DNA of 64,000 nucleotides from Macrostomum lignano (GCA_002269645.1 NIVC01000672.1:62001-126000), one strand, 5' to 3'; positions 1,439 through 43,496 are shown, counted from the stretch's first letter. The notes: generated from the sequence alone by a model not told the origin. Numbers and translations are program-made.

Positions 1439-2209
1439 TCAGACGCGCTCTGGCACTGCAAGCAGCTCCAGCAGCTGCGAGTCCGGATGCGGCAGGGGGC
1501 AGGCGGACAGACCCGGACGGTCAGACCTGCAGCTCCAGCTCTTTTCCGCGGCGCAGTCTATGGCAATTCTGCCGTTGACTTCGCACTCAAGCCACTGGCC
1601 AGTCTGGAATTTTAGCCGCAGGCCGAACTGGGCTAACCAGTGCCAGAAGTTGAGGTCCAGCTGCCTCTGCAGACTCTGGCCGGCTGCGATTCTGCATCCC
1701 GTCAGCTGGTGGCACGGCGACCTGGCGCCCCAGTCTTCTTCATCCAGGACCCACGCGACAACTCGAGTAACGGCCTCTGGCGTCGCGTTCTTTATCTTGA
1801 GCTGCATCTGCACGGGCAGGCACGAGCCCTCGGTGCCCCCCTGCATAGGCCACTGGCTGGGCAGGTACGGCTCCACCAGGATCTCGAAGCTCTCGTGCCA
1901 ACCAGCGGCTGTGCAGTCTCCGATCCACTTTAGGTACGGCTTCTTTCTGAGGAAGAGCTCCGTCTTGCTCTTCGCATCCCGGCTGTCGGATGTGCTTCCA
2001 ACGGACACCACGATGCTCCCCTCAGAGGAGACCTCAATCTCGGTCAGCCTGCCGTCCCGGATGGCCTTCCAGGAGCCCAGCCACCGCAGGCCCGGGTTCG
2101 CCGCCATGTAGGCAAGCGCCTTTGAATTCGCGTCCGCTGCGTCGGTGACGGGGCCGAGCTGTACCGTCCAGTGCACGGCCGGCGGGACTGGGAGGGTGAG
2201 CACCATGTC
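1439..2209 (-). CDS. Protein with two MVL-like (mannan-binding lectin) repeats plus an unassigned C-terminal beta-rich domain, paralog 1
   Basis: 255-aa GC-rich ORF preceded by a strong acceptor (tttccgctctcctactcacccag|GAC ATG, exon starts 2209). Repeats VQLGPVTDAADANSKA...GLRWLGSWKAIRDGRLTEIEV and VSVGSTSDSRDAKSK...PYLKWIG. Collinear paralog at 7218-7976. The ORF is well supported; the lectin label less so. Confidence 0.75.
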   Translation of the reverse strand, partial: DMVLTLPVPPAVHWTVQLGPVTDAADANSKALAYMAANPGLRWLGSWKAIRDGRLTEIEVSSEGSIVVSVGSTSDSRDAKSKTELFLRKKPYLKWIGDCTAAGWHESFEILVEPYLPSQWPMQGGTEGSCLPVQMQLKIKNATPEAVTRVVAWVLDEEDWGARSPCHQLTGCRIAAGQSLQRQLDLNFWHWLAQFGLRLKFQTGQWLECEVNGRIAIDCAAEKSWSCRSDRPGLSACPLPHPDSQLLELLAVPERV

Positions 2210-3191
2210 CTGGGTGAGTAGGAGAGCGGAAACCAGTCACAATTAATTCAGTTCCGATGTACTACTGCAGGGTACTACTCCCTGTCTTGTATCTAACATG
2301 GTTTGCAGCAGACGTGATGACCATATATAAAATGCTCGATCTGGTGCACTGACTCTGACAGTTTGAACAATACGAGCAAATCTCTGTGAGTGAGCCACGA
2401 GCACTGCACCAGCAATCCGCTACACTATGTGCATTTGTAGAGAAAAGAGTGAGGGCAAAAACAAGTATTAAGCTTTTTTGACTTCGATGAAAATAAAGAT
2501 CGAGTAAATAAACTAGTGAGTGGGAAGAGACTGTCAGAAGTAAGAAAAAGAAAGAGACGATAATAAGAAGAATCAGATTGAACTAAGCAGAGAGAGAGCA
2601 CAGTAAACAGAGAGGTGAGAACAGAAGAATAAGATAAGCACGAAAGTCGAGACAAGTCTGTAATGTCTATTAATTCTCGTGAAAATTCTCACTCTCATCT
2701 CAGAGTAGTATTTTAAAAAAATTTTGTAATCTGACCAATCGCTTCTTCGTCTACATTCGTGGATTTAGCACAGAAAATAAACATTAAATAGTTTTGCAAG
2801 AGTTGCAAGAGATGCGTCACTCACCTCGATCTCCAAAAATTTAACACCGGGCGGAAGACGCCCCGATCCAAAGGTCGCTTTTCTTAAATAGAGCTTAGCT
2901 CGTATACGTGTATAAACAAATTATACTCGCATGCCACGGGTGCAACTCGTGCAGCCAAGAGACTTATTTGGTTTTGGTTTGGTTTGATTTATTTCTGATA
3001 AAACTCTGATAACAGGCGCTGTAACACCGCGACTTCCACATTAGGTTTAGTTGTTTGACACATTCCAAACCATGCAAAAATGCACTTTTGCCTTAGAGAT
3101 TATAGTATGCGAAATACCAAGGAGGTTGACTATTAAAAACAATTAACCACCAGCCAACGCGTAGCCGCAGCAGGGCGCATGAAAAACAAAA

Positions 3192-3441
3192 TTACCAAGC
3201 GGTCGGACTGCTGCAGAGTCATGCATAGAGGCCACGCATGGTTACCAAGCGGTCGGACTGCTGCAGAGTCATGCATAGAGGCCACGCATGGTTACCAAGC
3301 GGTCGGACTGCTGCAGAGTCATGCATAGAGGCCACGCATGGTTACCAAGCGGTCGGACTGCTGCAGAGTCATGCATAGAGGCCACGCATGGTCACCAAGC
3401 GGTCGGACTGCTGCAGAGTCATGCATAGAGACCATGCATGG
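3192..3441. repeat. 50-bp tandem repeat, 5 copies
   Basis: Unit ttaccaagcggtcggactgctgcagagtcatgcatagaggccacgcatgg starts at 3192, 3242, 3292, 3342, 3392. Confidence 0.95.
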
Positions 3442-4057
3442 TCACTAAAGAATTTTAAGCTAATTGAAGAATTTAAGAAGTACATAACGAAAACGCAGTG
3501 AAGCAGAAAGCTTAATTCCTGAATAAATTGTAAGTTAAAGATTCGAGCAGAGGACCTGGTAGAGGATCTGGCACGCGTCCTTGCTTTCTGAGGGTCCGAT
3601 GGGCCTTGATTTCTTTCAGAGTCCACCGCAGACCCACGAACTAATGCAATGACAAGTCGCAAGGTCGCAATTTTCCAAAATTTCATTGGATAAGATGTAC
3701 AAAATCGAGTCCAATGGTTTATACAATGAGAAAAATGATGGGTATAGGATAGATCTTCTGTCAGGTGAGGCAGCCTCTGTGGTGGGATAACCAGCTAATA
3801 CGGAGGGTTGGATCTTTCTTGCCGAAAAAAATCGCTGTGAGCCTTACTACAGCATCAAGTCGGCTCCGCCAGACTGCAGCACATTCGGCTTCAGCTGCCA
3901 TCAAAAAAGTTCCAATAGAAGGTCTCCTGAACCGCAAAAGCAGAATTTTGTAAGTCAAAGGATCCAAGAGACATGGATTGCATCAACACTCGAGTGCATC
4001 ACGCTGCCGAAATCTCATACATCAGCTTCCAATGTGAATTCAGTTCATCAGTCAAAA

Positions 4058-5298
4058 CTATTGACTGCGCTGAGCCTGCTGCACCTGCTGCTGGAGTTGC
4101 TGCACCTGCTGCTGGAGCTGCTGCACCTGCTGCAGGAGCTGCTCGACGCTCCTCGTCCGCTCGTCCAGTCCGCTCAGCAGAGTCCGCAGCTGCGAGACGC
4201 CTCCGAACCTGTCAGCCATCTGCTCGAGCTCCATAGTGCTGTGAGCCCAGTTCGCCACGTTGACCTGCAGCTTCTTGAACTGCTCGAAGACGCTGCCGAC
4301 TCGCCTCTTCACGTCGGCCACCTCGAGACCGTCGGCGGTTGTGACGGCGGGAGCTGCGGAACCTACATAAGACTGCGGCACGGCGGCTGCTGAAAATAGG
4401 AAAAAAAAATAAACCACAGAACAGCATCTTCTGCGTGATTTTATTACTGATTTTGACACCAGTTCTTACAGGGACTCTGCTGAGCTATTGCTGCCTGCTT
4501 GAGTTTTGAGTCCATGAGCTCAAGGTGAGAGTCCACGCTCTCCCTGTAGTGCCTCTCCAGATCGGACCTGCGCACCATCGCCCTGCAGCCCAGGTGAGAG
4601 TACTTGCACTCTACCGGTCTCTCGGGACACTCCGACAGGTGAGCAACATATCCCCGCCTGTCCATCGGTGTGCTCCGCTCCGAGCAGTGAGGACAGCGAG
4701 CTGAGAATCTCGGACAGCACACATCGGACTGCAGATTCCTGTGACTGGTCTCCATCTCGCTGTGTGTGACCAGCTGAGAGCACAGGTCGCAGGTCTCCTT
4801 CCTGTGGCGACACTCGCTGCTGGTGTGTCGCTGCATGTCCTTCTTCAGGATGAGCTCTTTGCACTGCTCACAGCGGAGTGAGTGCCAGTCGCAGCTCTGT
4901 TGCACATGCTGGTCTATGCGAGCCCATTCCAGTTGGACAGAGCAGCCGGCGTCGCAGTTCGGACAGCGGACTCGCAGCTTGGCGACCTCGCGTCTAGTCG
5001 CCATGTCGGGAAAGCAGGTAGCATGGCTCACCTCGGTCTCGACATCGCCGCCGCTGCCACCGCCGCCAACGTCCTCCTCCGAGTGGTGGTCTCTGAGTGT
5101 GCAGGCCTCGGTGTGTCCGGGACAGGGCCGCTTCTCCACCTCGTGCAGCAGGCCGGTGACGCAGGCCTGGCACAGGCGGCACCCGTGCGGAGTCTGTCGG
5201 GCGTTGAAGAGCGGCTTGGAGCAGCTGCTGCACTGCAGGTGAGCCGGCAGAGCGGAGACCGGCCTCGCAACCGACACACTCGAAGGCAGCTCCGACAT
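4058..5298 (-). CDS. TRAF-like copy 1: RING + zinc fingers + coiled coil, no MATH (exons 5298-4470, 4389-4058; 386 aa)
   Basis: ATG 5298; phase-1 donor CCC T|GTAAGA; acceptor ttttcag|CA; in-frame join to the coiled-coil exon ending LQQQVQQAQRSQ*. TRAF-type fingers such as CEQCKELILKKDMQRHTSSEC and CKYSHLGC...ERH...HLELM. Confidence 0.88.
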
Positions 5299-5716
5299 TG
5301 TTGTCCAAACGTCCTAAGAGTCAGACTGCAATTTAAAAGTGGCATGCAAATATTTTTTATGAGCGTGGTGCCCAGACAGAGAGGGATCGAAGACGGAATA
5401 TTTAAATTGACGGAAAGCGTCGATCAAGGCAGCCTCCTTATTTGATTTATGCCTGCAATAAAATCGTTCCATAGTTTTATATGAAGCAGAAATAGGATTT
5501 TTGAGGCACAAATTTTGGTATTAATACTGGTAGCTTTTTAGGTATTTATAGTAGATCAAGTCTGCAATTTTACTGAAAACTTCTAATGGCTACTCTAAAA
5601 TTGATCGTGATTGATGTATTTCTAGCACGATTCTATCATTTTCTGCGGTTTTGTAAACTCGCGAGGCGGCAACTCGGCAGGGCATTCAGTTTTCAGGACT
5701 AAAAATAGTTTTCCTT

Positions 5717-6122
5717 TCAACATTAAATTAATTCAATTGAACTACGCGTTTCGCATGATACTGTGCATCTTTAGGTTTATTTTTTAGCGAAAGAAACGAG
5801 TGAGATCGGCAGTAAACAAATACAAAATTTCGGGGTGCAAATTCAATCAATATTTGAAGTACATGTTTGTTGGTCCAAAAGTCGAGAGGAAAAGTCCAGG
5901 GACGGAATGATAGCGATATAGTTTGAAGTACATAATGTACATACAGTGTCCCCTCCCTCAGAACACACGGAGAACAAATTCAAAAATATTGATTGAATTT
6001 GCACCCCGAAATTTTGTATTTATTTACTGCCGATCTCACTCGTTTCTTTCGCTCAAAAATAAACCTAAAGATGCACAGTATCGTGCGAAACGCGTAGTTC
6101 AATTGAATTAATTTATTGTTGA
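5717..6122. mobile_element. Foldback/MITE-like element, arms about 145 bp, spacer about 115 bp
   Basis: 5717-5860 is the near-perfect reverse complement of 5978-6122 (caattgaactacgcgtttcgc...gcaaattcaatcaatattt). No clear TSD found. Confidence 0.8.
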
Positions 6123-6269
6123 TTTTTGCCTTCCTATTCATCATACTTGCCAAGCGAGCAACTTTACCTGAGTTTTCCTTTCTGTCGATATTTCACTGCA
6201 AATGGCGAGTTTCTGTGCCGGCTAAAGGATAAATTTGAGCTCTCTGTCATCAGTTATTCGCTCAGTTCA

Positions 6270-6625
6270 GGTATCAGACAGAGCAGCTCAGCGTTAAACG
6301 CGTCTGATTCGTGTCACGACCCCTGGTTCGATTCCTCTCGGCTTGTGCGTTTGTGATTAAATTGACTGAGTTATTGTCATGCAATTCATACGAGGTACTT
6401 ATGAGGGCCAGCCAACGATGTACACTCGGTACACGCTACACCCTGTGTGAGCTGAGTGCACGAGTGCGTGCCTGTGTGTGGTATTGGCGCGCTTGTATTT
6501 GCTTGGGAGTCTGCGGAATGGGCAGAATGTCCTCAGCGCTGGTTGGGTTGTGCAGACGATGCCGCCGAGAGCGTTGCAACAGGGTGCCCCACAGCCCTCC
6601 TGCATCCTTCATCAGCCCTTATTGT
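6270..6625 (+). mobile_element. tRNA-headed SINE-like element
   Basis: B-box GGTTCGATTCC at about 6324 with an A-box-like agctcagcg upstream. Body (gggagtc..cggaatgg.cag...cagggtgc.cacagccctc) is shared with minus-strand copies at about 9690, 23150 and 44570. Confidence 0.55.
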
Positions 6626-7217
6626 GATTTGCGAGTGTAGCCCAAACCCTCCAGCGATTATTCATGAAATTTCCCGCAGATGTACTTTCTGTTGGGGCTG
6701 CTTTCAACCTGGAGACCCGGGGCTGGCAGGGTGGGCGATGGGAGCGCAGGTGCAGTGGGCGATGCTGAGCTTAATTTTTTATCCCTTTCAGCAAATACTG
6801 AAGTATGATTATAACAGAGAAGCCACGCACTTGCTTCCTGCTTGAGTTGAGTTCGAGCTCGGCAGCCAACTTCAGGTCGCAGTCCGCCTGGCCTGGCTGC
6901 TCTGGCTGGCGGCTGCTTAAAATAGACATTTCTGTCACATGATTTGTTGGAACTGTACAATAACCAAAGTTTTTTCCATGGAAAATCCGTGCGGTAGAGA
7001 GCTGCGACCGTGGCAAAAACATGGCTCTCAGGTGTATTTTCGTTTCTATTTTTGTTCTGTACAGTACAATACAATGTCAAGTATTTTGATTGTATGCTTA
7101 GCGTTGTTTACAAATTATAAAATCAATCGTACACTATAATAAGTCAGTTGTCAGGCAATTTACGCTCCTATTTAACATTTGTACAAGAAGTGCCGCGCGT
7201 CTTTGAGCGGTGCGGCG

Positions 7218-7976
7218 TCATGAGTCGCACACGACCACCTCTAGCAGGCGGGCTCCGGGTTCCACCTTGTGGTAAACCGACAGGCCAGCTCCAGAGGAGA
7301 ATTTCCAATGATTTTTCGCCGAGCTGTCGATGGCCAGCCGGCTGTTCACCTGGAACTGCAGGTAGCGGCCGCTCTGGAAGCCGAGCCAGACCGCCAGCTT
7401 GGCCGTGTGGCTCCAGAAGTTCACGTCCAGCTCCTTCTCCAGGACGCCTCGCTCGGCGATATGCCCGTCGGAGAACTGGAGGCAGGGCCGCCGCTGGCCC
7501 CAGTCGCTGGGCTCCAAGCCCCTTGCAGTAATCCTGGTCACCTTCTCGGAGGTCAGGTTCCTCAGCCGCAGGCTGGTGGTCACTGGTAGGCAGATCCCAA
7601 CTGTGCCTTCCTTCATGTGCCACTCGGTGGGCAGGAAAGCTTCGACCACAATCTGGAAGTTCTGGAGCCAGCCGAGCTCTGAGCAGCTGGCTGTCCACTT
7701 CAGGTAGGGATGCTTTGCGATGAAGGCTTCAGCCTTGTCTTGCGCATCTCTGCGGCTGGAGGTGGCGCCCAGAGAGACAATAATTGACCCCGCGGAGGCG
7801 ACCTCGATGGAGCAGAGCTTTGAGTTCGGGGCGGAGTTCCAGCTGCCAGTGTACTTTAGTCCCGGATGACGGGCCTCAAACAGCTGAGCCTGGGACAGGG
7901 CCTCAGCCTGGCTGGAGATGCGACCGACTGGGACCCACCAGGACTGCTGGGTGTTCTGGAAGCTTCTGACCATCAA
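7218..7976 (-). CDS. MVL-like tandem-repeat protein, paralog 2
   Basis: 252-aa ORF collinear with 1439-2206 (shared IEV.S.GSI.VS.G, PYLKW, CLPV, DW...P, LD.NFW). Frame stays open to about 8035, with candidate acceptors at 7992 (phase 2) and 8020 (phase 1). Confidence 0.75.
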   Translation of the reverse strand: MMVRSFQNTQQSWWVPVGRISSQAEALSQAQLFEARHPGLKYTGSWNSAPNSKLCSIEVASAGSIIVSLGATSSRRDAQDKAEAFIAKHPYLKWTASCSELGWLQNFQIVVEAFLPTEWHMKEGTVGICLPVTTSLRLRNLTSEKVTRITARGLEPSDWGQRRPCLQFSDGHIAERGVLEKELDVNFWSHTAKLAVWLGFQSGRYLQFQVNSRLAIDSSAKNHWKFSSGAGLSVYHKVEPGARLLEVVVCDS

Positions 7977-9689: not shown

Positions 9690-9985
9690 ACTGAGCCTTT
9701 TTGTAGAGACAGGGGGGCTGTATGCACCCTGGCGCGCTGCACTTTAATCGACAATGTGACACAGCCGGTGAGAGGCATTACTGCCCATTCCGCCGACTCC
9801 TCTGAGCAGGCAGTCATTTGCACAGGCACACACACACACACACACAGGATTCTCACTTTATTTATCTTTAGGCATGTACACTTTACTGCACCTTGGGGGT
9901 TGGCCATCAAGGGTGTTAATTGCCGAGCAGAGCCAAGCTGAGATTCCAATTTAGCCTCAAATTAACCTTACTGCACTTGGAATGC
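9690..9985 (-). mobile_element. SINE-like repeat copy; head region abuts the 40-bp satellite
   Basis: Collinear with 23170-23480 (gggctgt.tgcaccctgg...ccattccg.cgactcc...ccttgggggttggcc...gattccaattt...actgcacttg). Confidence 0.6.
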
Positions 9986-11722
9986 AGTGAAGAGACTTCA
10001 GTGCAGACTTAGGTGGGCAGTGCACACTGGAGAGACTTCAGTGCAGACTTAGGTGGGCAGTGCACACTGGAGAGACTTCAGTGCAGACTTAGGTGGGCAG
10101 TACACACTGGAGAGACTTCAGTGCAGACTTAGGTGGGCAGTACACACTGGAGAGACTTCAGTGCAGACTTAGGTGGGCAAGTGCACACTGGAGAGACTTC
10201 AGTGCAGACTTTGGTGGGCAGTACACACTGGAGAGACCTCAGTACAGACTTTGGTGGGCAGTACACACTGGAGAGACCTCAGTGCAGACTTAAGTGGGCA
10301 GTACACACTGGAGAGACTTCAGTGCAGACTTTGGTGGGCAGTACACACTGGAGAGACCTCAGTGCAGACTTTGGTGGGCAGTACACACTGGAGAGACTTC
10401 AGTGCAGACTTAGGTGGGCAGTACACACTGGAGAGACCTCAGTGCAGACTTAGGTGGGCAGTACACACTGGAGAGACCTCAGTGCAGACTTAAGTGGGCA
10501 GTACACACTGGAGAGGCTTCAGTGCAGACTTAGGTGGGCAGTACACACTGGAGAGACCTCAGTGCAGACTTAAGTGGGCAAGTGCACACTGGAGAGACCT
10601 CAGTGCAGACTTAAGTGGGCAGTACACACTGGAGAGACGTCAGTGCAGACTTAGGTGGGCAGTACACACTGGAGAGACCTCAGTGCAGACTTTGGTGGGC
10701 AGTACACACTGGAGAGACCTCAGTGCAGACTTTGGTGGGCAGTACACACTGGAGAGACTTCAGTGCAGACTTAGGTGGGCAGTACACACTGGAGAGACCT
10801 CAGTGCAGACTTAGGTGGGCAGTACACACTGGAGAGACCTCAGTGCAGACTTAAGTGGGCAGTACACACTGGAGAGGCTTCAGTGCAGACTTAGGTGGGC
10901 AAGTGCACACTGGAGAGACTTCAGTGCAGACTTTGGTGGGCAGTACACACTGGAGAGACCTCAGTACAGACTTTGGTGGGCAGTACACACTGGAGAGACC
11001 TCAGTGCAGACTTAAGTGGGCAGTACACACTGGAGAGACTTCAGTGCAGACTTTGGTGGGCAGTACACACTGGAGAGACCTCAGTGCAGACTTTGGTGGG
11101 CAGTACACACTGGAGAGACTTCAGTGCAGACTTAGGTGGGCAGTACACACTGGAGAGACCTCAGTGCAGACTTAGGTGGGCAGTACACACTGGAGAGACC
11201 TCAGTGCAGACTTAAGTGGGCAGTACACACTGGAGAGGCTTCAGTGCAGACTTAGGTGGGCAGTACACACTGGAGAGACCTCAGTGCAGACTTAAGTGGG
11301 CAAGTGCACACTGGAGAGACCTCAGTGCAGACTTAAGTGGGCAGTACACACTGGAGAGACGTCAGTGCAGACTTAGGTGGGCAGTACACACTGGAGAGAC
11401 CTCAGTGCAGACTTAGGTGGGCAGTACACACTGGAGAGACCTCAGTGCAGACTTAAGTGGGCAGTACACACTGGAGAGACTTCAGTGCAGACTTAGGTGG
11501 GCAGTGCACACTGGAGAGACTTCAGTGCAGACTTTGGTGGGCAGTACACTCTGGAGATACTTCAGTGCAGACTTAGGTTGGCAGTACACACTGGAGAGGC
11601 TTCAGTGCAGACTTAGGTGGGCAGTACACACTGGAGAGACCTCAGTGCAGACTTAGGTGGGCAAGTGCACACTGGAGACCTCAGTGCAGACTTAGGTGGG
11701 CAAGTGCACACTGGAGACCTCA
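9986..11722. repeat. 40-bp satellite, about 43 copies, with a 722-bp higher-order period
   Basis: Unit gtgggcagtacacactggagagacttcagtgcagacttag. Rare variants recur 722 bp apart (10241/10963, 10511/11233, 10634/11356). Confidence 0.95.
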
Positions 11723-12113
11723 GTAGCTCGTAGAGGCCGACTGGAAGGTTAGTACATGTAAAAATTCAGAATATACTGAAGCGGTCAGCGCGGACTTCAG
11801 AGTCGGGCACACTCTGAGGATATCAAAACACTTGTTTATTAGTTGATAACAATTGCACGAAAATGTTCTGTCAACGAAGTCAGGAAAGTGTTTTAAAACT
11901 GCTTAAAATTTTAAATAGGTTTTTAAATATTCAAAACTTAAAACCCGACTCGGATTTGATCAGTTTGCTGGAAAAAACTCACATTTCTATCTGAATAATA
12001 ATCGTCAAAGGCTTTTTCTCATTCATAAACATCACATCGATACTGGCCGATTAGGTACGATGCAATGAAGCAATCGAATGCACACATTTTTTCCTCGTTG
12101 AAAATTTTAAGCA

Positions 12114-13353
12114 TCAAGCTCTCTGTTGCAGCTGCTGCACCTGCTGCTGGAGCTGCTGCACCTGCTGCTGCAGCTGCTCGACGCTCCTTGTCCGCTCGTC
12201 CAGTCCGCTCAGCAGAGTCCGCAGCTGCGAGACGCCTCCGAACCTGTCAGCCAGCTGCTCGAGCTCCATGGTGCTGTGAGCCCAGTTCGCCACGTTGACC
12301 TGCAGCTTCTTGAACTGCTCGAAGACGCTGCCGACTCGCCGCTTCACATCGGCCACCTCGCGACCGTCGGCGGTAGTGGCGGTGGGAGCTGCGGCACCGA
12401 CAGAGGACTGCGGGACCGCAGCTGCTGGAAATGAACAATTAAACATTATTGCAATAGCGACCAACAAAACATTCGCATCCAACCACCTTAATGTATTAGC
12501 GCACATTGATCTTTGCTATTATTCAACAGAAAAGCTTACCAGAATTCGATGGAACAACAGCTGCCTGCTTGAGCTTCGAGTCCATGAGCTCAAGGTGAGA
12601 GTCCATGCTGTCCCTGTAGTGCCTCTCCAGATCGGACCTGCTTACCATCTCCCCGCAGCCCAGGTGAGAGTACTTGCATTCTACCGTTCTCTCGGGACAC
12701 TCCGACAGGTGAGCAACATATCCCCGCCTGTCCATCGGTGTGCTCCGCTCCGAGCAGTGAGGACAGCGAGCTGAGAATCTCGGACAGCACACATCGGACT
12801 GCAGATTCCTGTGACTGGTCTCCATCTCGCTGTGTGTGACCAGCTGAGAGCACAGGTCGCAGGTCTCCTTCCTGTGGCGACACTCGCTGCTGGTGTGTCG
12901 CTGCATGTCCTTCTTCAGGATGAGCTCTTTGCACTGCTCACAGCGGAGTGAGTGCCAGTCGCAGCTCTGTTGCACATGCTGGTCCATGCGAGCCCATTCG
13001 AGTTGGACAGAGCAGCCGGCGTCGCAGTTCGGACAGCGGACTCGCAGCTTGGCGACCTCGCGTCTCGTCGCTATGTCGGGATAGCAGGTAGCTCGGCTCA
13101 CCTCGGTCTCGACCCCGCCGCCAACGTCCTCCTCCGAGTGGCGGTCTCTGAGTGTGCAGGCCTCGGTGTGTCCGGGACAGGGCCGCTTCTCCACCTCGTG
13201 CAGCAAGCCGGTGACGCAGGCGTGGCACAGGCGGCACCCGTGCAGAGTCTGTTGGGCGTTGAAGAGCGGCTTGGAGCAGCTGCTGCACTGCAGGTGAGCC
13301 GGCAGATCGGAGACCGGTCGGGCTCCCGACACTCGCTCTGGAAGTTCTGACAT
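12114..13353 (-). CDS. TRAF-like copy 2: RING + ZF + coiled coil, no MATH (exons 13353-12540, 12424-12114; 374 aa)
   Basis: ATG 13353; donor TCT G|GTAAGC; acceptor catttccag|CA; ends LQQRA*; AATAAA on the minus strand at 11835-11840. Confidence 0.88.
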
Positions 13354-15656: not shown

Positions 15657-18600
15657 ATGTCAGGACTTCCTCAGCGAGTGTCGGCAGCCCGACCGGTCTC
15701 CGATCTGCCGGCTCACCTGCAGTGCAGCAGCTGCTCCAAGCCGCTCTTCAACGCCCGACAGACTCCGCACGGGTGCCGCCTGTGCCACGCCTGCGTCACC
15801 GGCCTGCTGCACGAGGTGGAGAAGCGGCCCTGTCCCGGACACACCGAGGCCTGCACACTCAGAGACCACCACTCGGAGGAGGACGTCGGCGAAGTCGAGG
15901 TCGAGGTGAGCCAGGCTACCTGCTTTCCCGACATGGCGACGAGACGCGAGGTCGCCAAGCTGCGAGTCCGCTGTCCGAACTGCGACGCCGGCTGCTCTGT
16001 CCAACTCGAATGGGCTCGCATGGACCAGCATGTGCAACAGAGCTGCGACTGGCACTCACTCCGCTGTGAGCAGTGCAAAGAGCTCATTCTGAAGAAGGAC
16101 ATGCAGCGACACACCAGCAGCGAGTGTCGCCACAGGAAGGAGACCTGCGACCTGTGCTCTCAGCTAGTCACACACAGCGAGATGGAGACCAGTCACAGGA
16201 ATCTGCAGTCCGATGTGTGCTGTCCGAGATTCTCAGCTCGCTGTCCTCACTGCTCGGAGCGGAGCACACCGATGGACAGGCGGGGATATGTTGCTCACCT
16301 GTCGGAGTGTCCCGAGAGACCGGTAGAGTGCAAGTACTCTCACCTGGGCTGCAGGGCGATGGTGCGCAGGTCCGATCTGGAGAGGCACTACAGGGAAAGC
16401 ATGGACTCTCACCTTGAGCTCATGGACTCGAAACTGAAGCAGACAGCGATATCTCATTCGAATTCCGGTATGTCAGTATTGTGTCGGGTTAATGGATTTT
16501 TTTGTTGAGACAAATTTTATGCACTGCTACTCCAAAAATTTTATTTTTTGGTCAGCTGTTTTCAGTGGCCGATGGCAGTTTATGGACGCTCCTGTGGGCG
16601 ACCGAAGCCGACACGACGCACAGCTGGCCTCCGTGCCGCGAGACCCCGGCCAAGATCCGGTAGAATCGCCTGTGAGCTCTGAATCGTTCCTTCACAGGCC
16701 GCATGCGTTGGGTGGAGCTCTGCAGTTGCAGAATGTGAGCTGCTTTGCGATTTTTTAACTCATTTGCATCTTTATTCATTTAGACGAAAGTCCTGTCACT
16801 GAGCCCATTCCACATTTTTAGCCAATTTGCAACTCCATTGCTGCCGACTCGCCTGTCCGAATGCTGGGCAGGCCGAAACAGCTGCTGTCCGAGCTGGTGT
16901 TCAGTCGGGGCCATGCTGGCCGAGTCACGTCTGCCTGCTCTCTAGACGGGCGGCAGATTTTTGTTTCGGGAGGCGCGGACGGAATCGCGGTGCTGTGGCA
17001 CCTCGGCTCAATGCGTCTCCAGAGTCGAGTCCGGGCCCCTGCGAGTTGGGGTTCAATCACCTGTCTGGTGTCTCCGGCATCTGACATTCTGTTGGCCGGC
17101 TGGGAGAATCTGAATGGACTCGTGCGACTCCGGTGCCCGGAGGGGTATCTGTGCGACACTGATGCTGAGCTGGAGCACCTCTTGAGCACTGGACAGGCGG
17201 AGCTGCTTCAAGGCAACTCACCTGTGGCGGCCATGTGCACAGTTCCCGAATCTGCTGAGGTCATTGTCGCCCTCACCAACAGAAGCCTCGCACTGGTGCC
17301 AGCCGAAGGAGGTCTTCAGCCGCTGGTTGGGCTCACCGGTTTCGACCCTCTGGCTGGCCCGCCGGTGTTTTTGCGGATTCTGGAGCCCGGGTGGCTGCTG
17401 GCATGCCAGCTCAGTAGCCCTGTGCTCCGCTCCGCTCAGCTGCACACGGCTCAGGATGGCAGGATGGCTGTCAGCGGCTGGCGAACCTTCCAGTGCTTCG
17501 ACGAGATGGCGGCGGATGCTTCTCCAGTGATTCGGGCGTGCGCTGCAGGCTGCGGTCCCGGAGTTGCCATTGTGGCGTTTCGGTGCCAAAGTCGCAATCG
17601 GATCGCCATCGTTAAACTCGGCTCCGATGCGAAAATTCATCCCGTCTTGACGGGTTTTATGGTGAATGTGTTTCTTTTTAATATTTGATGTCTGAATTTC
17701 TAACCTTATAATATTGCTTCAAGTTGCTGCATGCTGAAGTTCAATTCTGAAACTGAGGATGTTTTCCATTTTTCACCAAATTCACCCAGAACTTCCTCAA
17801 GATTTCACCCCGATCTCACCCCGATCTCACCCCGATCTCACCCCGATCTCACCCCGATCTCACACCGATCTCACCCTGATCTCACCCCGATCTCACCCCG
17901 ATCTCACCCCGATCTCACCCCGATCTCACCCCGATCTCACCCCGATCTCACCCCGATCTCATCCCGATTTCATCACGATCTCACCCCGATTTCATCCCGA
18001 TCTCACACTGATCTCACCTCGATCTCACCCCGATCTCACCCCGGTTTCACCCTGATCTCACACCGAACTCACCCCGATCTCACCCCGATCTCATCCCGAT
18101 CTCACCCCGATCTCACCCCGATCTCACCCCGATCTCACCCCGATCTCACCCCGATCTCACCCCGATCTCACCCCGATTTCATCCCGATCTCACACTGATC
18201 TCACCTCGATCTCACCCCGATCTCACCCCGGTTTCACCCTGATCTCACACCGAACTCACCCCGATCTCACCCCGATCTCATCCCGATCTCACCCCGATCT
18301 CACCCCGATCTCACCCCGATCTCACCCCGATCTCATCACGATCTCACCCCGATCTCACCCCGATTTCATCCCGATCTCACACCGATCTCACCTCGATCTC
18401 ACCCCGATCTCACCCCGGTTTCACCCTGATCTCACACCGAACTCACCCCGATCTCCCTGCGATTTGTCTCCCTTTCCGCAGTGCCACACCCGGCCGATAC
18501 GAGCCATCAGCCTGCTGACGAGCGACCTCACGGGCGCCCTGCCGCTCCTGGCCACGGCCTCTGCTCAAGGGAAAGTCAGCGTTTGGCGCATGCAGAGCGG

Positions 18601-19331: not shown

Positions 19332-19950
19332 CTTCCCTCTGCCTTCACTCTGCCTTCACTCTGCCTTCCCTCTGCCTTCCCTCTGCCTCCCTCTGCTTTC
19401 ACTCTGCCTTCCCTCTGACTTCCCTCTGCCTTCCCTCTGACTTCCCTCTGCCTTCCCTCTGCCTTCCTTCTGCCTTCCCTCTGCTTTCACTCTGCCTTCC
19501 CTCTGCCTCCCTCTGCTTTCACTCTGCTTTCACTCTGCCTTCCCTCTGCCTTCCCTCTGCCTTCCCTCTGACTTCCCTCTGCCTTCCCTCATCCCTCTGA
19601 CTTCCCTCTGCCTTCCCTCTGCCTTCCCTCTGACTTCCCTCTGCCTTCCCTCATCCCTCTGACTTCCCTCTGCCTTCCCTCTGACTTCCCTGTGCCTTCC
19701 CTCTGCCTTCCCTCTGCCTTCCCTCTGCTTTCACTCTGCCTTCCCTCTGCCTCCCTCTGCTTTCACTCTGCTTTCACTCTGCCTTCCCTCTGCCTTCTCT
19801 CTGCCTTCCCTCTGCCTTCTCTCTGCCTTCCCTCTGCCTTCACTCTGCCTTCCCTCTGCTTTCACCCTGCCTTCACTCTGCCTTCCATCTGCCTTCACTC
19901 TGCCTTCACTCTTCCTTCCCTCTGCCTTCTCTCTGCCTTCCCTCTGCCTC
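19332..19950. repeat. 11-bp minisatellite (cttccctctgc)n
   Basis: Direct reading; shorter paralogous array at 41395-41690. Confidence 0.95.
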
Positions 19951-20417
19951 TTACAATTCAGGGGCTTTGGGACTCCCATTGGGACTCCAAAGATAAACTG
20001 GGACACCACTTTGTCTGCATAGAGATTTACAACAGGCTCTCTAAATCGAAAGTACATGAATGAATGCGCGGCCGAATCCTTGGTCCTTGGAGCGGGAGTC
20101 GCTCGGCCACCCAGCCCTGAATTCTGAAAGCTGGAAGCAAGTCGCTCAGAAGAGGAAAAGTAACGAGAACTGAAGTATGCAGTGAGAAGACCTTGAGAAA
20201 AGGCAGAAAATAAGAAAACCAAAACCGAGCTTCTCAAATCTAATTAGCACTGAAGATTTTATTTGTTCAAAAAGCCGCTTGAAAAAAGCACTATTTCGGC
20301 AATCGGCAATCCAAGGTTCGATTAAAACAGCTTTTAAACTGCTCTTATTAACTTCGTCAGGAGCGTAGGACGGCCCGATAACGCATCTTGGGCAGGATGC
20401 GACGCTTCCTTCTCACC

Positions 20418-21758
20418 TCACGTCAGATGCTCGCAGAAGTCGCCCAGCGGCAGGACCAGCCGGATGAACACCAGGCCGTGCTGATCGGCGTTGCCGCCCG
20501 TGGTGCCGCTGCAGCCGCTGCCGGAGCAGAAGGAGCCGCCGCCGCCTCCAGACTGGCTGGTGGTGAACCCGGCCCCGCCTCCGCTGAAGCCGCCGCCGGC
20601 CCCGGCAGCGCCCCAGTTGGGGTTCGTCGTGCCGCCGCCTCCGCCGCCGCCGAACCCGCCGTCGCCGGTGTTAGAGCCGCCGGCGTCGCCGCCGACCCAG
20701 CCTTCAGCCCGACTGCCTCCTCCGTCGCCATCGCTCGGCCCCCGCCTGGCGTTCACCGGCTTCCCCAGCCAGCCGGCGCCGCAGCCGCCGTGGTTGTGGC
20801 TGGTGGGCATGGCGCTCGGGTTGTTGAAGCCCGGCTGTCCGTTGCTGCCTCCGTAGCTCTTGGGGCTCGTGCTTGGCGCTGTGTCATCTGTTCCATTCGG
20901 GCCGGCTTCGCCCAGCAGGCCTGAAACAAATCAAAATTTGCTCTGCACCACTCAAGCGGCAATGATGATGCTCACGTTCGATCACTGTTTGAGTTGCTAG
21001 AATGACTCACCAGCTGAGCTGTAGGTGCCGGCACCGCCGCCTCCGGCCGCAGCCAGCAGCAGCTCGTCTGCCGTCCTGTACACGAAGCTGCCGCCGCCTC
21101 CACCGCCTCCCTTGTAGTTCGAGCTGGGCGGACCGCCGGCCTGTCCGACCACGACGCTCAGCTGGGTGCCGGCCGTCAGGTTGAAGGCGCCGGACACGAA
21201 GGCGCCGCTGCCGCCAGCCTTGCCTGAGAAGGAGTTGGTGCCGCCTCTGGCGCCCGACACTTCGATCCGGTAGCAGCCGGTCGAGGGATCGTCACGGACT
21301 GGATGGAGCCGGCCCTGCCCGTGCCGCTGTCTGCAGTGAGAGAGGGCGCCATTTGGACTCTCAAAGCACAGCATGAGTGTTTAGATCGCAGTGACATCTA
21401 GCCATGAGGTGGAGTGACTCACTTCTCAGCTCAATGGTGACATTCAGCATCCTCTTCCTCATGGTGAAGTTCTCGGCCGTCCACAGCCTGGCGCCGGGCT
21501 CGGAGCCCACGAGTCTCTGCACGTGAGTCCCGGCCGGTCCCGGCGCCTGAGACGCGTTTTTCAGCAGCAGCAGCTGGCAGACGCTCGAGCTGGGGATGAG
21601 CGAAGCCAGCAGGCAGCCGTTCCGCTGGCACGCTGCCAGACACAGCAGCCGCGACTTGACGCCGGTCAGGTTGACGAGTTCGCTGCTGGAGGCGTTGCCG
21701 ATCCGGACGGGTCCGGTGTCCAAGGCGAAGAAGCGGCTGGAAATGTCTGGCTGCAAGC
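20418..21758 (-). CDS. PAN/apple-like + ALK/LTK-type glycine-rich protein, copy A (exons 21758-21423, 21330-21011, 20920-20418; 1-nt frameshift at about 21285)
   Basis: CLAACQRNGC...VCQL (PAN-like); YRIEVSGARGG...GAFVSGAFNLTAGTQLSVVVGQAGG...GGGGGGSFV...AAAGGGG (Gly-rich domain). Phase-1 GT-AG introns. Possible signal-peptide exon MLFGIMSLLCCTALGKCNAE at about 21943-21883 with a weak donor. Confidence 0.75.
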
Positions 21759-22147
21759 CTGTGAAATTTCAGTTTGAGTCGAAAGTATTGAGCTTTAGTC
21801 TCTCATATGATGAAGTGAGTCAGTCAAACCATCGGTTTGAAATGCGAGTTGAAACTGCGACTATTCAGGGCTTAGAATTGACATTCGGCGTTGCACTTTC
21901 CGAGGGCGGTGCAGCAGAGAAGTGACATGATTCCGAATAACATTTCAGAGCTAGTAGAAATTTCTCGGCAAATCTCAGGCTGCCGCTCATTTAGGCGAGG
22001 CAGTGGAAATTTCCTCTTCCGCTGTTCATCGTCCGTTGCGTGGAGACAGTGAGCAGTTTATCTTTATGGCTTGGCAATTTCTCATTGGCTGTCTTCCACG
22101 TATGCGCTTGAGCTGCATGACGGCGGCTTTTCGATAGGTGGATCCAC

Positions 22148-22465: not shown

Positions 22466-23149
22466 CTATGCAGGGAGTATTTTGACATCAAGCTCAACCG
22501 TCATCCTGTTGTGAATCAGATATGATTTCGCAACTGCAGCTGCTTTTTTTAACTCAGTAGGTATTCTGATCCCAGCGCCGATCTGTTGACTTCCCCATTC
22601 TAAACTGTAGAAGCCGCGTGTCGAGCAGAACGGGAAGTTCCGCTTGCCGAACTTTTTGAATTGAAAGCAGCTTTTTTATAGCAAGACTGCAGGCTGAAGC
22701 AGATCCCGAAAAATACGCAATGCAACGGAGAGAATCCCAGCCAAGCGTTGCAAGCGCCACAAACCACAGGCAGGTCGGTACAAGCGTAGAGGAAAGTTGA
22801 CGAGGAATGAGTTGAGCTGAGCTGAGCAGGACTCGGTTAAAAAGTCTGTTGACGTTTCGGATAACATGAACAGCCGTTCCACCACAGCAGAAACGCAAAT
22901 TTGCAGACGCCCAGCAAAACATGGCTAATTCAAAACCTGGCTTAGGCAAAGTCCGGAAGCGCAGCTCGCTTACAAAAAGTTAACAGAGAGAGGGGGAGCT
23001 ACCGAACCAAGGAGTGGGATGGGCTTGGACAAAATACAAAATATACAAAACATTATAATTATACACAAACGTGCTATGAAAGACTGCTTAAAGAGAACGC
23101 AGTGATGTGTTCGGCACTTTTGCGGTGCAAGCCTCATTTCAATTCATTT

Positions 23150-23540
23150 TAATAAGATTTGCTCTGAAAATTACTTTTTTGTTAGAGGCAGAGGGCTGTG
23201 TGCACCCTGGTGCACTTTCAGCGACATTGTCACACAACCGGCGATAGGCACTACTGTCCATTCCGTCGACTCCCTTGAGAAGGCACACAAGCGCGCGGAT
23301 ACGTTTGCAGTCATGCGCACAGGCATGCATTCACACAGGAGTGTACAGCGGCCCAACTTTATGAATGTTACTTCACTGTGCCTTGGGGGTTGGCCCACAA
23401 GGTCGTTTATTGCACCAGCAGATGCAAACCAAGATTCCAATTTCCAATTCAGCCCCGAAATACTGTGACTGCACTTGAAATCGAGCCTGTGTCTTCGAGC
23501 ACATCAGAACGTCGCGCTGGACCACGGGAGTGCGGCCCCT
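23150..23540 (-). mobile_element. tRNA-headed SINE-like element
   Basis: Minus strand has A-box-like tggtccagcg and B-box-like ggctcgatttc, followed by the conserved body also seen at 6270-6625. Confidence 0.55.
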
Positions 23541-24285
23541 AAAAAATATCCTATATACTAAATTTTATCTAAAAACAAGGTACAAGTAAGGTCGCATTTT
23601 ATTGATCACATAAAAGATTAAAGTCTCCAACGACACTTAGTGCTTTGATTGACCGCTCTGCTTTACATTGAGATGCAACAGTAGTGAAGTAAACCAACTG
23701 TTTCTGAAGTGTATTCGGATGAGTTTGTCTTTCGACAGCATTTCGGCTCCCAGTGAAGTGCGAAAATCCCTTGGCTCGGTTGCATCATTGCTCATTGCTC
23801 ATTGTTTCAGTGGGGTTCTATTTGAAGCCGCTCTGATTTGACTCAAGACATCTTAGAGCATGGTTCTATTTGAACGCTAATTCTCAAGAGAAGCAGGACA
23901 TGGTGTCACAAGTCATCGAGCGGTCTTGCATTCGACCTCTGCGATTTGGGACCGAATGCAACCTGAAGGCAAGCACAGCTCGAGCATTGCATGCGCTGGC
24001 GCATTTTCGTGACAAGGACCACTGGAAGATGACGTTACATCTACTTAAGAAGATCTACTTAAGTAGTCCTTGTCTCGGAACTGGACATCGGGTTGTCGAA
24101 TTCCGCGCATTACCTGTAGTCCGATCATCGACTGCTCGTCTGCCGCGAAATAAAGGGAGGCAAACGTGGAAGCATCGATCGAATACGCAGATGTTGCACT
24201 GATTCAACCCTCTCGGGATTGCGCAGCCGGTCTAGCTGGACGAATTCGCGATCCAGGAAGCGAAGGAAGAGATGGAGTGCTCAAA

Positions 24286-25232
24286 TTCAGCAGGTAATCA
24301 ATTCAGCAGGTAATCAATTCAGCAGGTAATCAATTCGGCAGGTAATCAATTCAGCAGGTAATCAATTCAGCAGGTAATCAATTCAGCAGGTAATCAATTC
24401 AGCAGGTAATCAATTCAGCAGGTAATCAATTCAGCAGGTAATCAATTCAGCAGGTAATCAATTCAGCAGGTAATCAATTCAGCAGGTAGTCAATTCAGCA
24501 GGTAATCGATTCAGCAGGTAATCAATTCAGCAGGTAATCAATTCAGCAGGTAATCAATTCAGCAGGTAATCAATTCAGCAGGTAATCAATTCAGCAGGTA
24601 ATCAATTCAGCAGGTAATCAATTCAGCAGGTAATCAATTCAGCAGGTAATCAATTCAGCAGATAATCAATTCAGCAGGTAATCAATTCAGCAGGTAATCA
24701 ATTCAGCAGGTAGTCAATTCAGCAGGTAATCAATTCAGCAGGTAATCAATTCGGCAGGTAATCAATTCAGCAGGTAGTCAATTCAGCAGGTAATCAATTC
24801 AGCAGATAATCAATTCAGCAGGTAGTCAATTCAGCAGATAATCAATTCAGCAGGTAATCAATTCAGCAGGTAATCAATTCAGCAGGTAATCAATTCAGCA
24901 GGTAATCAATTCAGCAGGTAGTCAATTCAGCAGATAATCAATTCAGCAGGTAGTCAATTCAGCAGGTAGTCAATTCAGCAGATAATCAATTCAGCAGGTA
25001 GTCAATTCAGCAGATAATCAATTCAGCAGGTAGTCAATTCAGCAGGTAATCAATTCAGCAGATAATCAATTCAGCAGGTAATCAATTCAGCAGGTAATCA
25101 ATTCAGCAGGTAATCAATTCAGCAGGTAATCAATTCAGCAGGTAATCAATTCAGCAGGTAATCAATTCAGCAGGTAATCAATTCAGCAGGTAATCAATTC
25201 AGCAGGTAATCAATTCAGCAGGTAGTCAATTA
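24286..25232. repeat. 16-bp minisatellite (aattcagcaggtaatc)n, about 59 copies
   Basis: Direct reading; the paralogous array at 45706-45962 has only about 16 copies. Confidence 0.97.
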
Positions 25233-25856: not shown

Positions 25857-27145
25857 TCAGGCTCGATGTCGCTGCAGCTCCTGCACCTGCTGCTGGAGCT
25901 GCAGCACCTGTTGCTGCAGCTGCTCGACGCTCCTCGTCCGCTCGTCCAGTCCGCTCAGCAGAGTCCGCAGCTGCTCGACGCTCCTCGTCCGCTCGTCCAG
26001 TCCGCTCAGCAGAGTCCGCAGCTGCGAGACGCCTCCGAACCTGTCAGCCAGCTGCTCGAGCTCCATGGTGCTGTGAGCCCAGTTCGCCACGTTGACCTGC
26101 AGCTTCTTGAACTGCTCGAAGACGCTGCCGACTCGCCGCTTCACGTCGACCACATCGCGTCCATCGGTGGCTGTGGTGGCAGGAACTCCGGTACCGACAG
26201 AAGAATGCGGGACCGCGGATGCTAAAAGTTTAAAAAAATTAATTTAATATCCGAGAATACGTTCGTAGCCGCTTTTACTGCATAACCACTTTACTGGTTT
26301 AGAAAGCAAATCTTACCAGGACTCTGCTGAGCTATCGCTGTCTGCTTCAGTTTCGAGTCCATGAGCTCAAGGTGAGAGTCCATGCTTTCCTTGTAGTGCC
26401 TCTCCACATCGGACCTGCGCACCATCGCCCTGCAGCCCAGGTGAGAATACTTGCACTCTACCGGTCTCTCGGGACACTCCGACAGGTGAGCAACATATCC
26501 CCGCCTGTCCATCGGTGTGCTCCGCTCCGAGCAGTGAGGACAACGAGCTGAGAATCTCGGACAGCACACATCGGACTGCAGATTCCTGTGACTGGTCTCC
26601 ATCTCGCTGTGTGTGACCAGCTGAGAGCACAGGTCGCAGGTCTCCTTCCTGTGGCGACACTCGCTGCTGGTGTGTCGCTGCATGTCCTTCTTCAGGATGA
26701 GCTCTTTGCACTGCTCACAGCGGAGTGAGTGCCAGTCGCAGCTCTGTTGCACATGCTGGTCCATGCGAGCCCATTCGAGTTGGACAGAGCAGCCGGCGTC
26801 GCAGTTCGGACAGCGGACTCGCAGCTTGGCGACCTCGCGTCTCGTCGCCATGTCGGGAAAGCAGGTAGCATGGCTCACCTCGGTCTTGACCTCGCCGCCG
26901 CTGCCACCGCCGCCAACGTCCTCCTCCGAGTGGTGGTCTCTGAGTGTGCAGGCCTCGGTGTGTCCGGGACAGGGCCGCTTCTCCACCTCGTGCAGCAGGC
27001 CGGTGACGCAGGCCTGGCACAGGCGGCACCCGTGCGGAGTCTGTCGGGCGTTGAAGAGCGGCTTGGAGCAGCTGCTGCACTGCAGGTGGGCCGGCAGATC
27101 GGAGACTGGCCGGGCTCCCGACACACTCGAAGGCAGCTCGGACAT
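25857..27145 (-). CDS. TRAF-like copy 4: RING + ZF + coiled coil (exons 27145-26317, 26221-25857; 397 aa)
   Basis: Donor CCT G|GTAAGA; acceptor cttttag|CA; the coiled coil carries a 51-bp internal duplication (LRTLLSGLDERTRSVEQ twice); ends LQRHRA*. Confidence 0.88.
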
Positions 27146-32864: not shown

Positions 32865-33101
32865 TGCTTTATGGAAATTTATTTTAAAGGATTTTCCTTT
32901 TTTGTCGATTTCACGAGACTGGTCCTTGTGGGGTGATGCGGCTTTTTACATGTGACGGTGGACTTTTCTTTGTGCCACCCCATTTTTGATAAGTCTATAA
33001 ATAGACCTGGTGCGCGCCAGAGGGCGATACTTGTTTTTGTCTTTGTTGCGGCTCAGTTAGGAGCCTTTGGACAATCATCTCATTCTTACTTATTTACAAG
33101 A

Positions 33102-34140
33102 ATGCAACATGGTGGCAGCGGTGCGGGCTCGAAGCACCCGTACAACCTGTGTTCCCAAGACGGGGCGCTCGGAGAAGGCTCCGAAGACAATGCTGAAGAA
33201 GCCAGCGGAATCCAAGATTCAGCTACGCTGGAGGGCGCGAATCTGATGGAGACAATGAAGATGCTCCTGACGCACCAGAGTCAGCAGCTACAAGAAATGA
33301 CTCGCGCGCAAGAAAGACAGTCAGCATTCTACCTGGAGCAACTGGCTCGTCAGCAAGCGGAGTTCACGAAGCTCCTGGCCGAGTCCAAGCCACGACCACA
33401 AGCAGTGGAGCCCAAGCTGTTTAAGCTGACGGACTCTGATGACATCGAGGCATTCCTGATGACCTTTGAAAGGGCAGCGGCATCGTGTGGATGGCAAAAG
33501 TCAGAGTGGACGATTCGGCTGGCACCGCTACTGACGGGCGTCGCGCAGAGCGCATTCCACAGTCTGACGACAGCGGCGAGCGCGGACTACGACTTGGCAA
33601 AGGCGACTATCTTAGCGAGATACAACATCGGCGAGGAGACCTACCGACAGCGATTTCGGTCTTTGCGGAAGGCGCCTGAAGAGACCTTCCAGGTGTTCGC
33701 GACAAAGCTGGAAGACCTGTTTGTCCGATGGATGACAGCTGGGCTGGACGAGGATCAGAGAGAGGAACTGATAAGTGGCGACTCCATCGTCAGGCAGAAA
33801 GTGCTTCTGGAGCAGTTTACGGACTCTCTGACAAAATGACTCCAGGTGTGGATGCGAGAGAGAAAACCGAAGGACATCAAAGAGGCTGCGAAACTGGCCG
33901 ATGCCTACGCAATGGCAAGAAACAGCGACAAGGGCGGCGGAACACCAGGACACCCGAGCCAAGAGACCGCTGGGGGGGCGACGGCGTCCAATGCTATGGA
34001 CAAACAAAGGACGATTCAGAGACCGCAAAGCCTAAAGCCTAAGATTAGCTGCTTCAACTACGGAGGCCCCCACAAGAAGTTTCAGTGTACCAACAAGCCC
34101 GCCAATGTCCACTTGGCCTCAGAGGAAAGAGCTATGGATG
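33102..34140 (+). pseudogene. gag: gag (SCAN-like capsid region, degenerate zinc knuckle CFNYGGPHKKFQC)
   Basis: DDIEAFLMTFER...W...LAPLLTG.AQ.AF...YRQRFR...LLEQF; in-frame TGA at 33837-33839, then LQVWMRERKPK. Confidence 0.8.
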
Positions 34141-40598: not shown

Positions 40599-40690
40599 GT
40601 GACCGACCAAGTGATTTAGTGACCGACCAAGTGATTTAGTGACCGACCAAGTGATTTAGTGACTGACCAAGTGATTTAGAGACTGACTGA
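40599..40690. repeat. 20-bp tandem repeat (gtgaccgaccaagtgattta), about 4 copies, at the pol 3' end
   Basis: Direct reading. Confidence 0.9.
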
Positions 40691-43486: not shown

Positions 43487-43496
43487 CTGTGAAATT

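Follow-up and report, generated by a model that had tools for sequence, protein, structure and literature searches.

Two paralogous Macrostomum lignano genes with diverged MVL-type repeats and a predicted aegerolysin-like beta-sandwich

The mannan-binding Microcystis viridis lectin MVL (PF12151; 1zhq/1zhs) is a stand-alone protein of 113 amino acids (aa), composed of two tandem strand-helix-strand-strand repeats of about 50 aa, each with one helix packed against a three-stranded sheet, made without a signal peptide and assembled as an interlocked homodimer (PMC3407925). In the literature that we searched, it appears as a cyanobacterial curiosity and as an anti-HIV lectin. Here we consider two open reading frames, ORF A and ORF B, in a stretch of 64,000 nucleotides (nt) from the free-living flatworm Macrostomum lignano (NIVC01000672.1:62001-126000, assembly GCA_002269645.1; this whole stretch is called the window, and positions are counted within it). 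Both encode a pair of MVL-type repeats, likewise without a signal peptide, and share with MVL the glycine of GP, the DA or EA at the start of the helix, HPxL, the W-x-G-x-W of repeat 1 and the closing I/V-E-V strand. They differ from MVL in their animal host, as opposed to a cyanobacterial one, and in that the repeats make up the first 45% of a chain with two domains, the other of which is predicted to be a beta-sandwich of an aegerolysin-like fold.

The best structural matches of that second domain are aegerolysins (ostreolysin A6, Cry34Ab1/Gpp34, AfIP-1A and RahU; PF06355), which consist of a beta-sandwich of about 120-135 aa (13-15 kDa); there is no detectable sequence similarity between them and the domain in ORF A and ORF B, which is fused behind a lectin-type module. 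Fungal aegerolysins are not known to have a signal peptide, in which they resemble ORF A and ORF B, and they and the fruit-body lectins leave the cell or act in the cytosol without one. Actinoporins (PF06369) and fruit-body lectins belong to the same beta-sandwich fold class, and members use one face of it to bind glycans or phosphocholine lipids. Actinoporins, however, are about 175 aa long and form their pore with an N-terminal amphipathic helix, while our model has no helix before the sandwich and there is no sequence match. Aegerolysins bind specific membrane sphingolipids and often act with a partner protein; a survey of the window's long ORFs, in which multi-exon genes were not searched for, showed neither a MACPF gene nor any other partner gene. 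The closest proteins of all are a small group from environmental and Logan contigs (P0029/P0001, P0002, P0003 and P0053), which have the same two MVL repeats and sandwich followed by a helical, hydrophobic tail that ORF A and ORF B lack.

ORF A occupies positions 1439..2206 on the minus strand (255 aa, ATG at 2206, TGA at 1441-1439), and ORF B occupies 7218..7976 on the same strand (251-252 aa; TTG at 7976 is listed as the start, although the ATG at 7973 is the likely one; TGA at 7220-7218). Both are single-exon genes and lie where the initial annotation had put them. They are intact paralogs with 43% identity over 237 aa (BLASTP, E 2e-72), diverged as had been claimed, although the earlier estimate by eye of 35-40% identity was too low. 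The GC content at third codon positions (GC3) is 0.80 in both, against about 0.49 for the GC content of the window as a whole and 0.75-0.82 for GC3 in the neighboring TRAF exons, which indicates that ORF A and ORF B are genuine coding sequences with the codon usage of the host.

The presence of two tandem repeats in each ORF, also part of the earlier description, is borne out by an alignment score of repeat 1 against repeat 2 that lies 9-11 standard units (z) above shuffled sequences, none of 2000 shuffles attaining the observed value, and by an AlphaFold2 model of ORF B in which a strand-helix-strand-strand unit of about 50 residues is duplicated at residues 12-61 and 65-113. In ORF A, repeat 1 (residues 12-61) lies at 2024..2173 on the minus strand and the more degenerate repeat 2 (residues 64-113), for which the evidence is the internal-repeat score and a profile alignment described below, at 1868..2017; in ORF B the corresponding units are at 7794..7943 and 7638..7787, both seen in the model, the second also in the internal-repeat score. 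The two repeat peptides that had been quoted are exact to the letter, though they do not come from a single ORF: one is the first repeat of ORF B and the other the first repeat of ORF A. Because the first strand of repeat 1 already begins at residue 12, there is no room for a signal peptide, and its reported absence stands. Pfam and NCBIfam scans of both ORFs gave no match, ORF B by itself found nothing in a word-indexed search of 5.8 billion proteins, and counterparts of ORF A and ORF B were absent among about 15 billion proteins searched; the two genes thus appear to be unannotated.

The homology of the N-terminal repeats to MVL is carried by four tests more sensitive than the Pfam scan (a profile search, a profile-profile alignment, a single-repeat model and comparison with solved structures), all of which agree. 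A profile made from ORF A and ORF B alone, searched against 1.84 billion representative proteins, had 26 matches at E<=1e-3, three of them full-length relatives; the short matches consist of two to four repeats, whose sequence is that of the MVL repeat. Among ten of these matches scanned with PF12151, six were above the cut-off, two (full-length relatives) were below it and two were unmatched, and the PF12151 proteins were reached by our profile at E values from 5e-14 to 5e-4. One match, P0024 from Pseudoalteromonas, is annotated as "mannan-binding lectin / Lectin MVL". An hhalign comparison of the N-terminal halves of both ORFs with a profile of eight MVL-family proteins, including no sequence from the window, gave a probability of 98.9% and E 2.8e-17 with both repeats in register. 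A hidden Markov model (HMM) of the single repeat, built from 21 bona fide MVL repeats with the window sequences excluded and scored in a set of 39 sequences, assigned repeat 1 a score of 35.8 bits in ORF A (independent E value 9e-12) and 26.0 bits in ORF B. MVL itself (1zhq) was the top match in the PDB by sequence with the two-ORF profile (E 0.09), and the sequence of the MVL repeat that the initial annotation had given agrees with chain 1zhq_A. In an AlphaFold2 model of residues 9-120, with a predicted local distance difference test (pLDDT) score of 86, the strand-helix-strand-strand unit appears twice, and 1zhq_A was the sole significant Foldseek match (E 1.4e-3, probability 1.0; the next match had E 0.4), which is the structural agreement that had been called for.

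Some results pull in the other direction. The Pfam model of the family, PF12151 (36 positions long, gathering score 25 bits), matches neither ORF even at E<=1, which, read strictly, is the lack of a profile match that had been named as grounds for rejecting the resemblance, although hhalign finds the relationship; the full-length relatives P0001 and P0003 also fall under the gathering score, at 16.9 and 23.4 bits. Repeat 2 on its own is barely detectable by the repeat HMM (7.8 bits in ORF A, 16.6 bits in ORF B). The match to the MVL fold has a template-modeling (TM) score of only 0.46 and a root-mean-square deviation (rmsd) of 8.4 A across both repeats, although in the model this low score reflects a different orientation of the two domains. 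Finally, MVL relatives were part of the alignment given to AlphaFold2, and the fold test therefore cannot count as independent of the sequence evidence. Taking both sides together, we consider it well supported, and hold with high confidence, that the repeats are truly homologous to those of MVL; at this level the resemblance first remarked upon was correct.

The state of the sugar site is another matter. Column frequencies across 55 repeats of the family show 80-99% conservation for each of the columns G-P-[IL]-W, A, W-T-G-x-W-x-T-T and M-S-V. This family signature, GP[IL]W[NS] / TGxWxTT / MSV, is near-invariant in the MVL family and mostly replaced in ORF A and ORF B, which retain scaffold positions: the Gly, the Ala, the Trp or Tyr before TG and, for the most part, the Gly of TG. 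The Trp of GPIW (80-90% conserved) is Thr or Ser in all four repeats of the window, the Trp of GxW is Cys in repeat 2 of both paralogs, TT is AI or SA, and MS is LT or LC. In the structure of MVL with Man3GlcNAc2, both tryptophans and the adjacent Asn and Thr residues are said to line the sugar cleft; we take the contacts to be made by Trp13, Trp37, Asn15 and Thr38/39 of MVL, an assignment backed here by family conservation alone. The initial annotation had remarked that the glycan-binding LW is not conserved, and the loss in fact goes further, with the first Trp gone from every repeat and most of the signature replaced. Its suggestion that these proteins are glycan sensors loses its footing thereby, for it depends on the MVL site, whose family-invariant residues are lost in all four repeats. 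Judging from these substitutions, binding of the N-glycan core in the manner of MVL is unlikely for ORF A and ORF B, although their repeats may have an altered glycan specificity.

About half of each protein, residues 130-251 or thereabouts, is a second domain that had been overlooked. In ORF B it lies at 7224..7589 on the minus strand (residues 130-251), and the homologous domain of ORF A, whose fold is taken from the ORF B model, at 1457..1819 on the minus strand (residues ~130-250). The full-length AlphaFold2 model of ORF B has a mean pLDDT of 84.3 and a predicted TM score of 0.73; the sandwich itself (residues 132-251) has block means of 78-97, mostly at least 85, and is preceded by a low-confidence linker at residues 114-131. 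DSSP assigns no helix to the model in the low-confidence segment that runs from residue 113 to residue 132, where the sandwich has its first strand. Foldseek searches of the PDB with the sandwich returned ostreolysin A (6myi, E 7e-5), Cry34Ab1 (4jox, E 7.6e-5, TM 0.64 on the target, rmsd 3.9 A) and AfIP-1A (5v3s, E 9e-4), followed in a second tier (E 1e-3 to 0.3) by sticholysin II, FraC, bryoporin, equinatoxin II and other actinoporins and by the fungal lectins XCL, SRL and BEL. These matches form one coherent structural group, the aegerolysin, actinoporin and fruit-body-lectin members of which dock on membrane lipids or glycans.

We predict, with moderate confidence, that residues ~130-251 adopt a fold of this class. 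Against the prediction stand two null searches with an alignment of the domain (seven members), which found no match in Pfam, PF06355 included, and none among PDB sequences at E<=10; the resemblance is therefore one of fold only and does not amount to membership of the aegerolysin family. The TM scores of 0.5-0.64 and the small number of sequences behind the model (seven) also counsel caution, as beta-sandwiches cross-match easily. The family-invariant polar and aromatic residues are mostly in the sandwich (N140, D158-W159, N186, R213, D217 and W224; F/Y187 and W188 are conserved, although not invariant), which leads us to place a putative working binding site there.

The closest relatives, P0029/P0001, P0002, P0003 and P0053, align with ORF A and ORF B along roughly 240 aa at 28-37% identity (E values between 8e-39 and 6e-21). 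Each is one uninterrupted ORF without a signal peptide, with a Met 1-4 residues ahead of strand 1, and each continues past the sandwich into a helical, hydrophobic extension of about 190-250 aa. This helical domain, with FWRxL... and YA..T..R motifs, lies at 4200-4977 of locus L004, 2650-3350 of L005, 3000-3622 of L001 and 1350-1932 of L003; it has no Pfam or PDB match, and tblastn found no trace of it in the window. The relatives retain GPIW or GTFW in repeat 2 (P0029 in both repeats), and the nearest of them hold GPIW and TGxWxTT in at least one repeat, suggesting that the ancestor was probably a lectin. Their contigs are gene-poor, with a DEG/ENaC exon, microsatellites and the apparent tail of a non-LTR (long terminal repeat) retrotransposon, features that make the DNA look animal-like. 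These data place ORF A and ORF B, together with the relatives, in what is probably a small family of animal genes. A five-sequence profile of it found only P0003 and P0053 in the word-indexed search of 5.8 billion proteins. Of two metagenome scans, the first confirmed no locus and the second found 14 loci that match the MVL repeats only and no further full-length relative. A fold search of BFVD returned only uncharacterized giant-virus proteins. Among more distant proteins with MVL repeats, P0005 (from an ENA contig) has three of them fused to a C-terminal RING finger, and P0033 (CAB1102798.1) from the brown alga Ectocarpus sp. has six.

The neighbors of both genes are TRAF genes, as had been reported. 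On the minus strand, TRAF A (4058..5298) has a RING/zinc-finger exon at 5298-4470 and a coiled-coil exon at 4389-4058, and TRAF B (12114..13353) has a zinc-finger exon at 13353-12540 and a coiled-coil exon at 12424-12114. ORF A starts 1.85 kb downstream of TRAF A and ORF B 4.1 kb downstream of TRAF B, on the same strand; a 1.7-kb minisatellite array (9985-11724) fills much of the latter gap. An M. lignano "TRAF-type domain-containing protein" (UniRef A0A1I8G627) matches the zinc-finger exon at 4444-5298 with 100% identity, and NCBI BOX15_Mlig proteins match it with 86-97% identity, in keeping with the earlier assignment of the genes to an animal; A0A1I8G627 also confirms the exon junction QQSP|SAAVPQ of TRAF A. 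In all, the window has nine copies of the RING/zf-TRAF exon with 88-97% DNA identity, at 4444-5298, 12526-13353, 26291-27145, 46976-47815 and 58164-58895 on the minus strand and at 15657-16454, 29838-30638, 50935-51603 and 62153-62935 on the plus strand; one copy is truncated and one is near the edge of the window. Given this density, a TRAF neighbor is expected for any gene here, and there is no TRAF gene beside the homologs on the relatives' contigs, so the immune cluster in which the initial annotation had placed the two genes must be regarded as an assumption. The parts further downstream vary, whereas the N-terminal TRAF exon looks as though it had been homogenized or had recently been amplified.

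Four of the minus-strand copies run on into a Gln-rich coiled-coil exon, and three plus-strand copies are followed by WD40-like exons in a TRAF7-like layout. The latter are ORFs of 275-336 aa at 16861-17688(+), 31045-31878(+) and 52066-53076(+), in each of which Pfam detects a single WD40 repeat (E 1e-4 to 2e-5); small exons bounded by GT and AG are seen around 16566-16737, between TRAF and WD40-like ORFs, and the WD40-like ORFs are probably the C-terminal part of the plus-strand TRAF genes. The other two TRAF genes of the coiled-coil type have a different gene downstream, with an ALK/LTK Gly-rich domain. Fragments of such a glycine-rich gene (PF12810, E 3e-9), along with a weak PAN-like stretch, are at 42724-43125(-) and 43089-43500(-), with a duplicate at about 20900-21770.

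ORF A and ORF B are probably independent genes and not exons of the TRAF genes, since the relatives start with a Met at the MVL repeat with no TRAF nearby and the annotated M. lignano TRAF proteins P0055 and P0056 end at a stop after the coiled coil. In M. lignano the motif YTNCAG is enriched at trans-splice acceptors (PMC8629364), and the spliced leader ends in ATG (PMC8629364). Reading the sequence for in-frame acceptors, we found a candidate spliced-leader or 5' untranslated region acceptor for ORF A at 2207..2235 on the minus strand (a pyrimidine tract and CAG, with the AG at 2211-2210, read as cag|GAC and ending 3 nt before the ATG), and for ORF B the sequence TTCCAG|AAC at 7955..7962 on the minus strand, which fits YTNCAG and lies five codons before the first strand. 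It is a reasonable idea that ORF A and ORF B may be trans-spliced, perhaps out of one transcript that also carries the TRAF gene.

The explanation that we favor, and think moderately probable, is that ORF A and ORF B are two long-diverged paralogs of one M. lignano gene without introns, absent from public protein sets, and that each encodes a degenerate MVL pair and an aegerolysin-like sandwich, the TRAF genes being separate. What such a protein might do can be proposed with low confidence only. The sandwich would be the working binding module, targeting a membrane lipid head group or a glycoconjugate. The MVL pair would be a dimerizing or scaffold module, given that MVL is itself an interlocked homodimer, or else would bind with an altered specificity. 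The whole protein would either act in the cytosol or be released from the cell by a route that needs no signal peptide. By analogy we infer a role as a defense or membrane-recognition factor, possibly with a partner protein as for the aegerolysins. A bolder proposal, for which we see a small chance, is that these genes belong to an unrecognized animal family for membrane attack or sensing, in which a bacterial-type MVL pair, a lipid-binding sandwich and an ancestral membrane-inserting tail would together make a lectin-guided cytolysin or immune effector; Macrostomum would have lost the tail and the sugar site, and its paralogs may be intracellular sensors co-transcribed (as spliced-leader trans-spliced, operon-like units) with an expanding TRAF family.

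Other interpretations draw on much of the same evidence. If the proteins were working MVL-type lectins, they would be cytosolic sensors of N-glycan cores or a related sugar, feeding TRAF signaling. This interpretation can call upon the reality of the MVL homology, the lack of a signal peptide, the TRAF genes directly upstream of both paralogs and the likelihood of a lectin ancestor, but the positions that have been replaced are highly conserved in the family, namely the first Trp in all four repeats, the second in both copies of repeat 2, and the TT and MS pairs, and the TRAF adjacency is expected by chance from nine copies in 64 kb and is not repeated beside the homologs, so we think it unlikely. 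A closer tie to the TRAF genes would exist if ORF A and ORF B were alternative 3' exons, giving proteins with RING/zinc-finger, coiled-coil, MVL and sandwich parts in which a new module replaces the MATH domain. The splice phases would permit the coiled-coil exon to be joined to ORF A, a point that counts against our preferred explanation: there are donor-like phase-0 sites (CAG|GTGCAG) in the coiled-coil exon, the strong pyrimidine tract and CAG before the ATG of ORF A make a phase-0 acceptor, and ORF B has phase-0 acceptor candidates. Strand and order are also alike in both TRAF/ORF pairs, and the plus-strand TRAF copies do appear to be spliced to a different, WD40-like C-terminus. Apart from the TRAF stop codons and the starts of the four homologs mentioned above, however, both ORFs have their own ATG 10-12 codons ahead of the first strand, and the TRAF parts have about 89% DNA identity as compared with 43% protein identity for the ORFs, implying separate histories. 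We therefore give the joined gene model a poor chance of being correct.

It might also be argued that ORF A and ORF B are decaying, non-functional relics of a longer lectin-cytolysin gene. The helical domain of 190-250 aa present in all four full-length relatives is missing from the window, the sugar-site residues are lost, and no annotated counterpart is found among about 15 billion proteins. A relic is nevertheless hard to reconcile with paralogs that are only 43% identical and yet uninterrupted over 252-255 codons, that end at the same domain boundary, that conserve the hydrophobic core and the invariant residues of the sandwich, that have the same GC3 as their expressed neighbors and that yield a confident AlphaFold2 model, and we judge decay to be very unlikely. 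Recent horizontal transfer from a cyanobacterium or other bacterium, one form of the horizontal origin that the initial annotation had entertained, or bacterial contamination of the assembly, would fit with the frequency of MVL repeats in bacteria and with the absence of introns. The ORFs are, however, flanked on a single contig by TRAF genes of M. lignano and by host repeats, and they have the GC3 of the host; their closest relatives, of the same architecture, are on animal-like contigs and not in bacteria, the best bacterial MVL being far weaker (E 5e-4), and the sandwich domain is found only with eukaryote-like relatives. Recent transfer of ORF A and ORF B is thus unsupported by the sequence comparisons, and we consider this alternative, like contamination, extremely improbable. 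It is plausible that the MVL repeat spread between bacteria and eukaryotes long ago, as it is present in both Pseudoalteromonas and Ectocarpus.

Elsewhere the window is rich in repeats. An LTR retrotransposon of the Ty3/Gypsy type at 32952-40639(+) has gag, protease, reverse transcriptase, RNase H and integrase ORFs in a rearranged order, and a PIF/Harbinger DDE transposase (PF13359, E 6e-26) at 35637-36851(+) breaks it up. Two blocks, 19663-21770 and 22973-24552, have second copies of 96-98% identity at 41397-43498 and 44378-45974. In addition to the array upstream of ORF B, long minisatellite arrays are found at 17774-18465, 24284-25231, 31951-32446, 43495-44160, 55808-56434 and 59615-60156, several of which yield spurious long ORFs in multiple frames; one example is ERQQRDSRETA, read from the 33-nt array at 43.5-44.2 kb.

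Full-text literature searches returned no description of an MVL domain in animals or of an MVL-aegerolysin combination, and a single paper that mentions PF12151. While the MVL family itself is known, what appears to be new is a diverged animal branch of it with a new domain partner, the predicted aegerolysin-like sandwich. Two gene models can be added to the annotation of M. lignano, and the 36-position Pfam model is seen to miss a whole diverged branch of the family. The range of the MVL repeat extends to eukaryotes, in the form of animal-like contigs and a brown alga. If the predicted architecture is true, a lectin has been joined to a lipid-binding or cytolysin-type module, following the logic of pore-forming toxins and innate-immune effectors, and the flatworm copies are a natural experiment in which the scaffold of the MVL repeat was kept after its sugar-binding signature had been lost.

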